Shown here: positions 2,693 to 8,246 of the stretch, piece after piece | How positions within the stretch are numbered: the first letter of the stretch is position 1 | Layout of the letters: each line of letters begins with the position of its first letter | Assembly: GCA_025201805.1 (NCBI GenBank) | Contig: MU619286.1 | Span: 1-64,000, forward strand | Direction of reading: 5' to 3' | DNA length: 64,000 nt | Source of the DNA: Parasitella parasitica NRRL 2501 | Taxonomy: Eukaryota; Fungi; Mucoromycota | Program-made: the position numbers and the translations under genes | Notes under the pieces: generated by a model | Databases searched by the model: none | What the model was told of the DNA's origin: nothing | Seen by the model: only the letters and a program-made list of their open reading frames with translations

Positions 2693-3735
2693 ATGACAGA
2701 CATTGTAGAAACTGGGAAAAAGAGAGGCTCCTCCGCGTTGGATGCAGATCAAGACAAAATTGCAGAAAAAACTTCAAAATTTGGATCAAGACTGTTAAAA
2801 AATGACAATGATGTTTTTTCTCACAATGCTTGGTAACGTATCCTGTTGCAGCTTGCGAAAATATAGTATTAATCAAACATAAGTGCAGGGATCATGTTGA
2901 TTGGGATCAAGAGCAAGAAGATATGGCAAAAGAAAAAGTGTCTCAGCAGTTGGAGAACCCTGTTCCTGAAGAAGAGCAAGGTAATATTGGACGCACAAAT
3001 AAGACAACCTATTGATATGGCCACATTGCAGAGCAATATTATATAGAACCTGCCGAGTACTGGAACAAGTTTTACGAAAAAAACGAAAACAAATTTTTCA
3101 AAGATCGCAACTGGTTAAAGAACGAATTTCCTGAACTGTTTGAGACAAGCCTAGAAAATGCTGGTAAAAAGCGAGTGTTTGAGATTGGATGTGGAGCAGG
3201 CAATAGCATGTTTCCATTGTTGGATCAAAGTCGAAACCCAGACTTGTTTGTGTATGCAGCAGACTATTCTTCAAAAGCAGTGGATGTTGTTCGCTGCAAT
3301 CGACACTATGATCCCACAAGGTCATCAGCATTCGTTTGGGACTTGGCTAGTAAAGAGATACCAAAGGAGATAGAACCTGAGTCGCTGGATATGATTGTAC
3401 TCATATTTGTATTATCGGCATTAGCACCAGATCAATGGGATCAGGCAATCGAAAACATCTACAAAATGCTGAAGCCTGGTGGAATGGTCATGTTTAGAGA
3501 TTACGGTAGATACGATCTTGCACAGTTAAGGTTTAAAAAGAATAGACTTTTAAAAGAGAATTTCTACATTCGTGGTGATGGGACAAGAGTTTATTTCTTT
3601 ACGCCCGAAGAGATTGCCAAAATTTTCGAAAGATTTGTAATCAAGCAAAATGCTGTAGACAGAAGATTGATTGTGAATCGACAAAAGAAATTGAAAATGT
3701 ATAGAGTTTGGCTTCAAGGCAAATTTCGAAAATAA
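2693..3735 (+). CDS. TRM140: tRNA N3-methylcytidine methyltransferase (Trm140/METTL2 family), 3 exons
   Basis: Spliced translation gives FGSRLL..VFSHNAW|DHVDW, WNKFY...FFKDRNWL..EFPEL, SAM motif FEIGCGAGNS, FRDYGRYDLAQLRF and YIRGDGTRVYFF. Confidence 0.93.
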
Positions 3736-3784
3736 AACGCCTGTTTGTCATAATCGATGTATAGCACTTCAAATAGGACATTTA

Positions 3785-3950
3785 GAGCATCTCCAACGGA
3801 GATGCTAATTTTAAAAGAAAATTGGTGAGAGGATGATACTTTCTTTTTTTTCTTTGGACAATTTTAGTCACCTGTAATGGTGTATAGGATAAACCGAACA
3901 CCTATGGCGTATCAAAGAGTAATATCAATGACACACAATGCTTGCAATTA
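3785..3950 (-). ncRNA. Candidate Fanzor omegaRNA scaffold region
   Basis: ~165 nt between the Fanzor stop (3951) and the element end, the usual position of omegaRNAs. Short hairpins on the minus strand: ATAGG..CCTAT, CACC-ATTACA-GGTG and the palindromic TIR. Positional inference only. Confidence 0.45.
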
Positions 3951-5019
3951 TTATTTTGATTCAGAATGCTGGAATGGTGAAAGACAAGCGTCATTGTATC
4001 TTGTTGCATGTAAAAATATTTTGAGGATGTTTTTTGCAGCCATTCTTTTTTGCAGTTGTTGCAGACATGACTGGTGAGGTATTCGTCTACCATTTGGACT
4101 GTAACACCACGATTTTCTTTACATTTTTGAAGAGCTTTTATGATAGTCTTTGTAGGTCCAGATCTTTTGCCTCTCATGGTAGGTGAAAATCTTCCATCTT
4201 CATAGGCAATGATGGTTTTATTTGCCTTCACTGAGCCATCAAGTGGTGGAGGGCGGGAGTAAGAATTGTTGTTTCTCATTGTTGTCTTCACATTGGTGGA
4301 CGCACCCGTACGATATTTGATGCTATCATGAGTAAACATCTTGACTATTTCGCTGAAGGCTTTTTGCTTCTTTCTATAACATCTAAACTTTAATTTTGAA
4401 GACCTATTCCATTTGGTTAACACATTTTTAAAATTTGTGCAAGAGTTTGCTACACTCACCAAAGGCCTCTGTTATAAAATTCATACATTGTATCGTAGGA
4501 TTGTATACGCTTTCTGCAAGCAATCAAGAATTTTGAAACTTCTCCGGTTTTTAATGAATCCAGTTCTGTTACCATTCTATGAGTGTTTGTGTGCTTCGCT
4601 TGATGAATCTTTCGAATGTGAGCTGCATCATTAAACCCACACAAGTGATAATACTCCTTTTGACTATAAGTGATCTCACTCTACCAGCTTGATCAACTAT
4701 AGTAAAAACCGTGCTAATTCCAGGGTCTACCGCCCACACTTGGCAATCATTGTCAACATCTGTTTTCAGGTCAGATGGCTTTACGGGAAGAGAGTCTTTC
4801 TTCTTTTTTGCTGTAATTCTTGAGAAGAGAAGAGAAACTGAATAACCATCCGTGTAGATAGCATTCCTAATATAACTTGATTAGTTCTAAGGCATTACTA
4901 AATTAAAACTATATGAACTTACTTAAAGATCTTCTTTCCATTGTATAAAGTTTAACCAACTATACAAACTTTATTAAACATTTTCTAAAATGGCCAGTAT
5001 TTCTGTCCTGAATGCTCAT
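3951..5019 (-). pseudogene. Fanzor1 (TnpB/Cas12-related RuvC endonuclease) pseudogene with 2 introns
   Basis: Reassembled translation: KKIFK|NAIYTDGYSVSLLF...VWAVDPGISTVFT (RuvC-I)...SQKEYYHLCGF...GLW|SSKLKFRCYRKKQKA...IIAYEDGRF...VDEYLTSHVCNNC...MAAKNILKIF. Introns at 4867-4922 and 4404-4459. Frameshift near 4672, internal deletion near 4045, N-terminal lobe largely missing. Confidence 0.88.
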
Positions 5020-5406
5020 ATTAATGTTAGAAGTGCGAGGTTCATAGTATGAGATATATAAATGTGGGTTGAATAAAAGTAATGAGCACCAGCTCCTGTT
5101 TTGAAAGTAGAGCGACTTTGCGTATAGAAGAAAAGATAAGAGTAAAATAGTAAAAGAGACTACAATGGATTCAAGAGCCAGAGACAAAAAAGCAAAGCAA
5201 CAGTAAGTAAGCAGAGACAATTACCAAAAAAGCAGACAAAACATTTCCGGGTTGTAAAAAAAAAAGGTTGCTTTAAATGGCTTTTTGTTTAGCATCTCCG
5301 ATGGAGATGCCCTTAATAAGTGAAACAAATCTTGAATTTTTTTCATAGAGATAATGTAATTCTCCCTTTCTCTCTGTCACCCTTCTTTTGTCCAAATATG
5401 CACATA

Positions 5407-8246
5407 ATGAGCAAGTCGACGGGTGCTTTATTTTCTAACAAAGAGCTGCTCAAACGCCGTCGTAAAGACTACAATTTTAATGACAGTAATTCCACAATCG
5501 ACCATGTCAATAGCACTTTTACCAAGGCAGATAAAGTAGCTACTGATAATAGAAAAGATTGGTGCATATCTACTTTACTGACTATGTGGACATGTTATAT
5601 CAGATTTTGGAAATTATCGCAGCCATCATCCGTAGTGTAAATGTGCCATGTCACTTGTGTACCAGCCCCTAATTGAAAATTCATAGGTTCGACGAGGTAC
5701 ATTTTGGTGGTTTCGCCACCAAGTACATTAACAAAACCTTTTTTATAGATGTCCATCCTCCTGTAAGTCTAATTGTTAAGTTCACGCTGACATATATTTA
5801 CAATATGTATAGCTGGCAAAGATGATGATCGCCTGGGCTGCTATGGTTGCTGGATTTGATGGAAAATTTGAATTCAAAAGAATTGGAAGGCAAGTAAATG
5901 TAATGCGACGGTAGCACCAAATATGCTGAAAATAGGATAGCGATTATCTCGATCCCAAAGTGCCTTATGTACAAATTCGTGCGTTCTGTGCATTTTATGG
6001 CATCTTGGTTGTTCCAATTTCCTATTGGAGCATGCGTGCGTGTGATCTGTCCATTCCCACCGCTTTCTTGACAGCCATTTTGCTTTGCTATGGTAATAAT
6101 GTGCACATTTATATTGCTATATTCATATTTATGCCAGTTGTCTTTTTTTTTCTTTTTTTTATTAGAGAATGGCCTTGTTATGAATAACCGCTTAATCTTA
6201 TTGGATTCCATTCTGCTATATTTCACTGCGTTTACCCTGTTAATGTGGTTTAATTTCCGTAAACATAAAAATCGCGCCTTTTCTGTTTGGTGGTGGATTT
6301 GGCTTACATTGACTGGCGTTGGATTAGGTGGTACTGTTAGTTGCAAGTGGGTTGGGCTACTTACCATTGCGACCGTTGGCTTAGCTGTCGTGTATGAATT
6401 GTGGAATATGTGGGGAGATGAAATGGTTTCCAAGGTGGGTTTCTGACATTTTTAGAAGTGTCATCTGAGAGTCGAAAGTATTTAATCCATGTTTACAGTG
6501 CAAATTCTTCAAACATGTCTTTGCTCGTGCGGTTTGTTTAATTGTCATCCCTCTGGTCATCTATATTGGCCTTTTCAAAGTTCATTTTGATATGCTTCCT
6601 TTGTCAGGAAGCGGGGATGCGGCCGTGTCCTCCGAATTTCAGACTTCCTTGACAGGGCACAAGTTTCCAAAATCATCTCAAGCAGGTAAGATAGACTTCA
6701 AGGACCATACAAAATGTCTAAATACATGATTGTAGATGTTGTGTATGGCTCAAGGATCACTTTGAACCACTTAGCTTATCGTGGTGGTTACCTGCATTCT
6801 CATGAACATCAATATCCTCATGGAAGTAAACGTGGGTGGGTTTTCATTGTTTTCAAAGTGCACTATTTCCTTACCCTGTGCTTTCTTTTATAGAGCAACA
6901 AGTAACTGTATATGCCCATGTGGATGAGCAAAATATATGGATCATTGAGGAGGCACACCGAACCAATTTCACAGTTCCAAAATTTGTTAAAAATGGGGAT
7001 ATAGTGCGTCTTGTACATGCCAAAACTTATAGACGTCTTCATACTCATGATATCCGCCCATCTACAAACGACAAAAAGTATCAACATGAAGTCAGGTATA
7101 TATATATATATATTGTCTGTTTATTGCATACTGTTGATGCTCAGTTTATTTATTTAGTGCCTATGGCTATAAGGGGTTTGAGGGAGATGCAAACGATAAT
7201 TGGCGTGTTGAAATCATCAACAATGGGTCTAATATTGCTGTTGGAGATCGTATTCGTGCTCGTCGTTCCGAATTCAGATTGATTTCTACAACTCAAAAAT
7301 GTGCCTTGTTTTCACGTAAACTCAAACTTCCGGATTGGGCATATGGTCAACAAGAAGTAACATGTATGAAGGATGCCCTTTATACAAGATCTCTTTGGAG
7401 AGTGGAAATGTCAACTAGCGACCTTTGTAAGTAGACTGATAAGAATAATTTGAAAAGAAAGGAATCCAACCTGTAGGATAGTGCCCGAAGATACTGAAAT
7501 GATTGAGTATGAAAGCAAAGGATTCTTGGCTAAAGTTTGGGAGCTGCACAAGGTAATGTGGAAGGTTAATGCAGGTTTGCCCGCAAATCATAAATTTGCT
7601 TCTAGACCCAAGGTAATTGGCACAGACAACATATAAATTACTGGATTTGGAATGAAATTGTCATTAGGATTGGCCCTTTCTTCGCCGTGGTGTCAGCTTC
7701 TGGACTAAAGACAACCGTAAAATATATCTACTGGGCAATCCTGTTGTATTTTGGAGCTCTACTACTTGCGTTATCATATATATCGCATTAAAATGCATTA
7801 TTTGCATACTCGAAAAGCGGCAAATTCGTACTGATTATTTCAGTGGAAATTGGCCTAAATACGACGCTGCTGCTGGTTTGTTATTTGTTTCTTGGGGAAT
7901 GCACTTCTTTCCTTTCAACTTGTTTGGTCGTCAGCTTTTCCTTCATCATTATATGCCTGCGCTTTATATGGCCACACTCCTTGTTGGTGTCTTTTATGAG
8001 ATGCTTACTTACAAAATGTCAGCTAAAATTCGTTGGACTTTGGTTGTTGTGGCAACTATTGTTGTCATCTACGTCTATCGAATCTTTCTTCCAATTACAT
8101 ATGGTGAGCCTTGGTCAACCAAAAAGTGCTTGGAGGCTACATGGCGTCCCACCTGGGATATGGGTTGTCCATGGTATGATCTCAAACCCAGAAAGACAGT
8201 AACGGGAAGACTTAAACCAGCATATGTTCCCAGTATTGAGCATTAA
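5407..8246 (+). CDS. Dolichyl-phosphate-mannose:protein O-mannosyltransferase (PMT1-like), multi-exon
   Basis: PSSVV|FDEVHFGGFA..FFIDVHPP|LAKM, LILLDS, SCKWVGL, MIR-domain motifs (YLHSH, RRLHTH) and RQLFLHHYMPALY. Confidence 0.93.

Follow-up and report, generated by a model that had tools for sequence, protein, structure and literature searches.

An internally deleted copy of a Fanzor1-carrying transposon family in Parasitella parasitica, most likely moved in trans by a PIF/Harbinger transposase

The analyzed window comprises positions 1 to 64,000 of contig MU619286.1 (assembly GCA_025201805.1) of the fungus Parasitella parasitica NRRL 2501, and its positions 3782-5315 hold a transposable element with remnants of a gene encoding Fanzor1, an RNA-guided nuclease. 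We conclude with high confidence that this element is a non-functional, internally deleted copy of a Fanzor1-carrying cut-and-paste transposon family, most likely moved in trans by a PIF/Harbinger transposase. The full-length form of the family is about 3.66 kb long, with one intron-containing Fanzor1 gene between 24-bp palindromic terminal inverted repeats (TIRs) and no transposase, and inserts at TWA (W, A or T) with a 3-bp duplication.

Results

Fanzor1 origin of the coding remnants

The first-pass annotation, made from the letters of the window, had recognized Fanzor1 in five peptides of the minus strand. All of them were located on that strand and in the collinear order claimed, spread over three frames: TDGYSVS (4833-4853), WAVDPG (4719-4736), KEYYHLCGF (4633-4659), VDEYLTS (4070-4090) followed by CNNC (4052-4063), and MAAKNI (4026-4043). 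A Fanzor1 profile built from 20 full-length homologues, which matches the solved SpuFz1 (E 5e-68), GtFz1 (1e-58) and PpFz1 (4e-50) over nearly their full length, detects four window pieces that are collinear on the profile and are its sole matches in the 64 kb:

4572-4880, minus strand: profile positions 339-404, E 2e-13
4459-4680, minus strand: profile positions 412-481, E 6e-14
3905-4471, minus strand: profile positions 477-572, E 8e-27
3954-4118, minus strand: profile positions 600-627, E 0.004

At the level of sequence comparison, these matches establish the Fanzor1 origin of the pieces, and the annotated identity therefore stands. The Pfam model PF07282 gives 18.1 bits on the window pieces, under its cut-off of 26.3, and 38.5 bits on a sibling with an intact C-terminus. 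A sibling C-terminus also matches Guillardia theta Fanzor1 GtFz1 (9cer; E 3.6e-5), and an exhaustive HMMER search with the C-terminal piece returned 563 relatives, the closest named ones being from Parasitella parasitica (82%), Rhizopus microsporus and Rhizomucor pusillus. A direct PDB search with the 189-aa piece of the window found nothing relevant, and a Rhizomucor locus and one metagenome contig with distant Fanzor relatives had no comparable TIRs.

The RuvC-I aspartate (DPG type, after the 'TDG' strand of the WED domain) is present in the window copy, and this residue is invariant in the 20-sequence alignment. The alignment also carries the Fanzor hallmark: the canonical RuvC-II site has Gly (AxGD), and an invariant Glu stands six residues ahead of the zinc finger (VDEYxTS). 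This agrees with the rule for Fanzor proteins that the catalytic Glu has moved to this position and Gly occupies the canonical RuvC-II site (PMC13565253). Since siblings read AYGDG, the E in AYEDG of the window copy is a private change. The window copy has neither a full C4 zinc ribbon (TNB) nor the RuvC-III Asp (RD..NAA.NI). Siblings keep both and pass the PF07282 cut-off, so the family is a member of Fanzor1 and the window copy a relic.

Structure and state of the window copy

From end to end, the element comprises the following features, coding parts being on the minus strand:

3782-3784: target-site duplication TTA, left copy
3785-3808: TIR at the 3' end of the Fanzor gene, palindromic (9-bp stem, 3-nt loop)
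3805-3871, minus strand: 67-nt intron in the 3' untranslated region (UTR) (joint 3804/3872, run X7 only; GT..AG)
3809-3953, minus strand: 3' non-coding region, candidate omegaRNA scaffold, common to transposase-bearing elements
3954-4043, minus strand: C-terminal remnant from MAAKNI to the stop codon, out of frame with the upstream exon (profile 600-627)
4044-4046: junction of a 97-bp deletion (from alignment to sibling C70; loose contig ends at 4044 and 4046 in all four sequencing runs)
4047-4403, minus strand: last coding exon with the RuvC-II region (AYEDG), the VDEYLTS Glu and the first CxxC (profile 477-572)
4404-4459, minus strand: 56-nt intron between coding exons (RNA joint 4401/4458, cut +2; GTGAGT..AG)
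4460-4866, minus strand: exon with the WED motif TDGYSVS and RuvC-I WAVDPG, frame broken at 4665-4666 (profile 339-404 and 412-481)
4867-4922, minus strand: 56-nt intron between coding exons (RNA joint 4865/4922, cut +1; GTAAGT..AG)
4923-4945, minus strand: last 7-8 codons of the upstream exon and, at 4942-4945, the junction of a 1.76-kb deletion (from alignment to C70)
4946-5288, minus strand: 5' non-coding region, presumably promoter and leader (5224-5315 common to other elements)
5289-5312: TIR at the 5' end of the Fanzor gene, inverted partner of 3785-3808
5313-5315: target-site duplication TTA, right copy

The extent of decay is visible from alignment to the most complete readable copy, the reference sibling C70:62492-66152 (3661 bp, TTA on both sides). 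The larger loss is that of C70 positions 1230-2988 (1.76 kb), the junction at element positions 1161-1164 bringing together C70 positions 1229 and 2989. It corresponds to about the first 520 codons, i.e., the disordered N-terminus, the zinc knuckle, REC and part of WED, and the profile positions absent from the window on this account (1-338) are present but broken in the C70 copy. C70 positions 273-369 (97 bp) are also missing, with the junction at window 4045. This deletion takes the second CxxC, which is the second half of the zinc ribbon, together with the RuvC-III Asp; profile positions 573-599 are not represented, and just downstream of the deleted Asp begins the remnant 3954-4043. Moreover, a 2-bp insertion at 4665-4666, which siblings do not have, shifts the frame, and sibling L012 reads this stretch in a single frame. 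In the 5' non-coding region the window copy is about 300 bp shorter than C70, owing either to a deletion in the other copies or to an insertion in C70. The 97-bp deletion also occurs in a longer C54 copy (L005), which does not have the 1.76-kb deletion; as a short direct repeat flanks the 97-bp junction, the deletion may have occurred on two occasions or been transferred between copies by exchange.

The first-pass annotation had held that the ORF (open reading frame) track fragments the gene and that automated annotation would probably miss it. The pieces do lie in three frames, and the corresponding alternative, a live intron-split Fanzor1 gene whose nuclease is restored by splicing, draws on three real introns and on spliced transcripts of the family. 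Sequencing run X7 was treated as RNA on the grounds of GT..AG joints in both neighboring genes, and three of its joints on the element, with CT..AC ends, occur in none of the three DNA runs. The introns 4867-4922 (in a contig with 102 letters on the shorter side of the joint) and 4404-4459 restore the expected frames across exons, and the splice sites of the third are conserved in siblings; its acceptor AG lies inside the TIR, so the last exon comprises the outermost 20 nt of the TIR and continues into host flank. Even after removal of the introns, however, the 2-bp insertion still breaks the frame, the 97-bp deletion shifts it and takes catalytic and zinc-binding residues, profile positions 1-338 are missing, and what is left of the upstream exon has no start codon. 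Alignment to full-length siblings already refutes a live gene for this copy, and we assign this alternative a near-negligible probability: splicing offers no rescue and there is no hidden gene. Read from its sequence, the window copy is a dead deletion derivative that is unable to make a nuclease, and it has no function beyond marking its family.

One X7 contig spans the 4942-4945 junction, and deletion derivatives of the subfamily to which the window copy belongs are thus transcribed, although the RNA contigs neither distinguish the expressed copy nor reveal RNA ends. The 3' 180 nt may serve as an omegaRNA scaffold. The fold of 3785-3990 (206 nt) has a z-score of -2.83, mostly due to the TIR hairpin, and RNA contigs cover the region; a search of the candidate region against Rfam gave no match, and the family copies are too alike for covariation. 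Summed X7 contig depth reaches 4000-6000 at 4958-5219, compared with about 200-900 over the rest of the element and about 340 in the neighboring genes. Possible reasons are that many copies have this part in common or that a short transcript is abundant here; no unusual fold was found in the 5' region on either strand.

Element ends, insertion site and neighboring genes

The annotated ends proved accurate. The TIRs of 24 bp lie at 3785-3808 and 5289-5312 with 22 of 24 positions identical, each being itself palindromic with a 9-bp stem and a 3-nt loop, and TTA triplets flank them at 3782-3784 and 5313-5315. These are the only two TIR matches within the window, where shuffled sequence leads one to expect none. 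The insertion is seen in three DNA runs, in which contigs pass from both flanks into the TIRs.

The left neighbor of the element encodes a Trm140-type tRNA methyltransferase (sharing 99% identity with a protein of Parasitella parasitica) and the right neighbor a PMT mannosyltransferase. An RNA contig corresponding to window positions 3030-3806 shows that the methyltransferase transcript passes its stop codon (3733-3735) and enters the TIR, which places the insertion in, or at the end of, the 3' UTR of that gene.

The family in the genome

The family numbers about 35-40 copies, in a genome that has at least 40 Fanzor1 loci belonging to several families. The TIR 24-mer gives 59 genome matches at no more than three mismatches and its reversed control none, and in a 15-copy alignment conservation ends right after the TIR and TWA. 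With the flank included, TWA adjoins 52 of the 56 family ends; among 38 readable ends, T occupies position -3 in 33 cases, A or T position -2 in 37 and A position -1 in 34, with a weaker A at -5. Identical triplets flank both sides in about 16 of 21 element pairs. The genome-wide search with TIR and internal sequence that had been proposed to collect further members thus recovered multiple copies with TWA flanks.

Among the internally deleted members there are four subfamilies, each with 2-5 copies that share exact junctions and stand at different loci with flanks of their own:

C70 positions 1230-2988 removed: the window copy, C50:188843, C122, C86 and C74
C70 positions 1108-2388 removed: C85 and C96
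C70 positions 678-2073 removed: C231, C4 and C2
C70 positions 557-1988 removed: C24 and C147

These copies must have transposed after losing a usable Fanzor frame, and hence have been moved in trans. At the lower end of the size range stand five TIR pairs of 585-643 bp, all with a perfect TAA duplication, three of which match 92 bp of the 5' end of the window element (5224-5315). Two further same-TIR pairs with matching TAA flanks were noted at G000:C89:127237-129488 (2.25 kb) and G000:C8:351939-362014 (about 10 kb); the C89 element has no Fanzor or Plant_tran match.

The same observations bear on the idea that Fanzor alone spreads the family by homing, with the TIRs and TWA as relics. TnpB and Fanzor are thought to aid retention by cutting the empty site (PMC10432273, PMC13565253), which lends this idea some appeal. 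Homing cannot, however, create new insertion sites with duplications, and both the copies without a usable Fanzor frame, found with identical junctions at different loci and with their own TWA flanks, and the pairs of about 0.6 kb, which resemble miniature inverted-repeat transposable elements (MITEs), are too short for a Fanzor gene and have perfect duplications, speak against it. We therefore regard homing alone as highly improbable and retain transposition in trans.

The search for intact siblings, which the first-pass annotation had considered possible elsewhere in the genome, was partly successful: one sibling has an intact C-terminus, but no assembled, readable sibling is intact throughout. 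The C70 copy is likewise broken by frameshifts and stops, and the longest other Fanzor copies hold runs of N. Intact siblings may lie in unassembled stretches. Runs of N of 0.5-2.8 kb occur at L036, L043, L061, L062, L065 and L071, which comprise the longest Fanzor copies and two DDE_Tnp_4 loci; they inflate the open-frame lengths of the Fanzor copies and may be assembly gaps over young repeats. At L061:5227-7698 (G000:C4:365226-367697), a frame of 823 aa belongs to a related Fanzor1 family (56% identical N-terminally), its ends appearing intact and its middle consisting of N. At L063:4072-4944 (G000:C2, copy about 171441-174920), an ORF of 290 aa has the first ~85 residues of Fanzor fused in frame to a Tc1/mariner-like helix-turn-helix (HTH) and DDE region. 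This fusion is probably a nested mariner insertion, for which Pfam gives a weak HTH match only.

A candidate transposase with the same ends

Matches to the DDE transposase model Plant_tran (PF04827) adjoin family ends at three loci. At C71:11558-12230 they score 88.3 and 76.7 bits (cut-off 22) and lie inside a TIR pair, C71:10960-12824 (1.87 kb), which, in addition to the TIR, matches window positions 3865-3960 (96 nt) at 93%. At C49:64865-65555 the domain lies about 600 bp inside an exact end (C49:66156-66168), whose final 65 bp match window 5251-5315. The third locus, C98, matches window 3784-3960 (177 nt) at 85%, about 1.2 kb downstream of the domain matches. In all three, the transposase is oriented to the ends as Fanzor is in the window, and the distance from the 5' end to the domain start is about 600 bp in both C71 and C49. 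Judged by coordinates, common termini thus unite members with a transposase, members with Fanzor and short members of about 0.6 kb with room for neither gene. Another candidate partner, DDE_Tnp_4 (PF13359), was rejected, as none of its seven loci adjoins a TIR and no such ends were found in those loci that were available as sequence.

TWA ends, amplified deletion subfamilies and Plant_tran at the same ends together support the earlier reading of a transposase-less, Harbinger-type family mobilized in trans. The check proposed with it, a search for an autonomous Harbinger element with the same TIR, comprising a DDE transposase and a Myb/SANT protein, gave a partial result: Plant_tran was found within or beside the same ends, by coordinates and with stops, but no Myb/SANT protein was found.

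Discussion

The most serious competitor to a PIF/Harbinger transposase is another DDE superfamily (Tc1/mariner with its TA target, Zator, or CACTA with 3 bp), the Plant_tran matches then being nested or coincidental. It gains from the fact that the transposase-bearing loci are known by coordinates only, from the missing Myb-like second ORF and from the mariner-like ORF fused to the Fanzor N-terminus in copy L063. It is difficult to reconcile, however, with the TWA flank at 52 of 56 ends; about half of the ends are flanked by TTA and not TAA, which does not fit a TA target. Coincidence is also a poor account of three separate Plant_tran loci that adjoin family end sequence in the same orientation, with the ~600-bp spacing repeated in C71 and C49, when the 32.8 Mb of the genome hold just a handful of Plant_tran loci and 59 TIR matches. 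On balance we consider another superfamily unlikely and prefer movement by a PIF/Harbinger transposase, most likely in trans, since transposase-bearing elements have the same TIRs and subterminal sequence.

Several observations weigh against this conclusion. With regard to the transposase, the link is one of coordinates and scores, in-frame stops interrupt every Plant_tran match so that no intact transposase was shown, and no Myb/SANT-type second protein was found near the TIRs (PF12776 has no match and the three PF13837 matches lie elsewhere, a weak negative from two Pfam models). With regard to the nuclease, none of the assembled siblings read has an intact Fanzor frame. With regard to the insertion, the empty TTA site between TRM140 and PMT that the first-pass annotation had proposed to look for was not found, as the three DNA runs, possibly of the same strain, all carry the insertion, and the orthologous locus of Mucor circinelloides is not syntenic, having no PMT gene downstream and thus no comparable empty site. 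Finally, the flanks differ in 5 of about 21 element pairs, four with TAA versus TTA and C71 with TAA versus TTG. The TAA/TTA mismatch in 4 of about 21 pairs exceeds the single-base expectation from the 5-10% divergence of the copies; unequal flanks may be due to mutation or to exchange between copies.

In the mechanism that we propose, the Plant_tran DDE transposase of same-ended elements would bind the shared ends and move Fanzor elements in trans. Internal deletions, as typical of abortive gap repair, would have given rise to subfamilies that continued transposing, one of which includes the window copy. An intact sibling would, by analogy with TnpB and characterized Fanzor1 proteins, produce an omegaRNA from its 3' end that stops at the TIR, with which it would cut the TWA site left empty and in this way restore the element. 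As a more tentative extension, which we consider possible but doubtful, the elements may form a split selfish system: one Harbinger lineage would have produced transposase-only and Fanzor1-only elements with the same TIRs, 5' leader and 3' end of about 180 bp, a few intact Fanzors protecting all of them in trans. If the 3' end is an omegaRNA scaffold, transposase-bearing and dead copies would also make guide RNAs into their own flanks. Such a system, if true, would provide the transposase-to-Fanzor link that Saito et al. did not find for Spu-1 of Spizellomyces punctatus.

The family described here adds a clear but ordinary instance to a known kind: earlier publications already report Fanzor1 in Mucorales, its capture by DNA transposons and a loose link to Harbinger. 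It bears on the questions of which transposases move Fanzor1 elements and why an RNA-guided nuclease rides on cut-and-paste transposons. The organism that encodes PpFz1 offers a natural set of same-ended elements, comprising Fanzor-only, transposase-only and gene-less members of about 0.6 kb as well as amplified dead derivatives, together with RNA evidence, which renders a model in which the transposase moves the element and Fanzor restores it testable.

Comparison with known systems

Fanzor1 genes were reported in Mariner, Helitron, IS4, Sola2 and MuDR elements, with ten families in Mucor circinelloides (Bao and Jurka, 2013; PMC3627910). That study also described, for Mariner and MuDR, Fanzor elements that have no transposase but carry the TIRs of confirmed autonomous elements. 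The closest precedent from that work is MCi-5 of Mucor circinelloides, which encodes Fanzor1 and a Harbinger-type transposase; as TIRs are not obvious in it and its putative duplication is of 6 bp, the authors left its superfamily open (PMC3627910). Harbinger also appears in the list of Fanzor carriers given by a 2026 review, which relies on the same study for this entry (PMC13565253). The window family resembles MCi-5 in being a Mucorales DNA transposon with an intron-bearing Fanzor1 gene and a link to a Harbinger transposase. In contrast to MCi-5, it has clear TIRs and a TWA flank, and its Fanzor and transposase reside on separate elements with shared ends.

With PIF/Harbinger elements the family shares the 3-bp TWA duplication, short TIRs and an extended AT-rich palindromic target. 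As in these elements and Tourist-like MITEs, a DDE transposase of the Plant_tran/DDE_Tnp_4 clan is accompanied by short non-autonomous derivatives with the same ends. It differs from PIF/Harbinger in that no Myb/SANT protein was found, the transposase-bearing element is about 1.9 kb long, the TIR is palindromic, and most copies carry a Fanzor1 gene as cargo.

Among characterized nucleases, PpFz1 comes from the same species (9cf0; PMC11423790) and recognizes ATN as its target-adjacent motif (PMC11423790). The window family has in common with it RuvC, the TNB zinc ribbon and the Glu six residues before the zinc finger, but represents a different lineage, matching 9cf0 through the profile only and not directly by phmmer. 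Spu-1, which encodes SpuFz1, is likewise a multicopy Fanzor1-only element with inverted repeats and with loci that encode no protein, and its 3' omegaRNA reaches the element end (PMC10432273). In the Spu-1 repeats Saito et al. detected no transposase, and they urged further study of the repeats and gene associations of Fanzor (PMC10432273). Unlike Spu-1, the family to which the window copy belongs has candidate transposase partners with the same ends.

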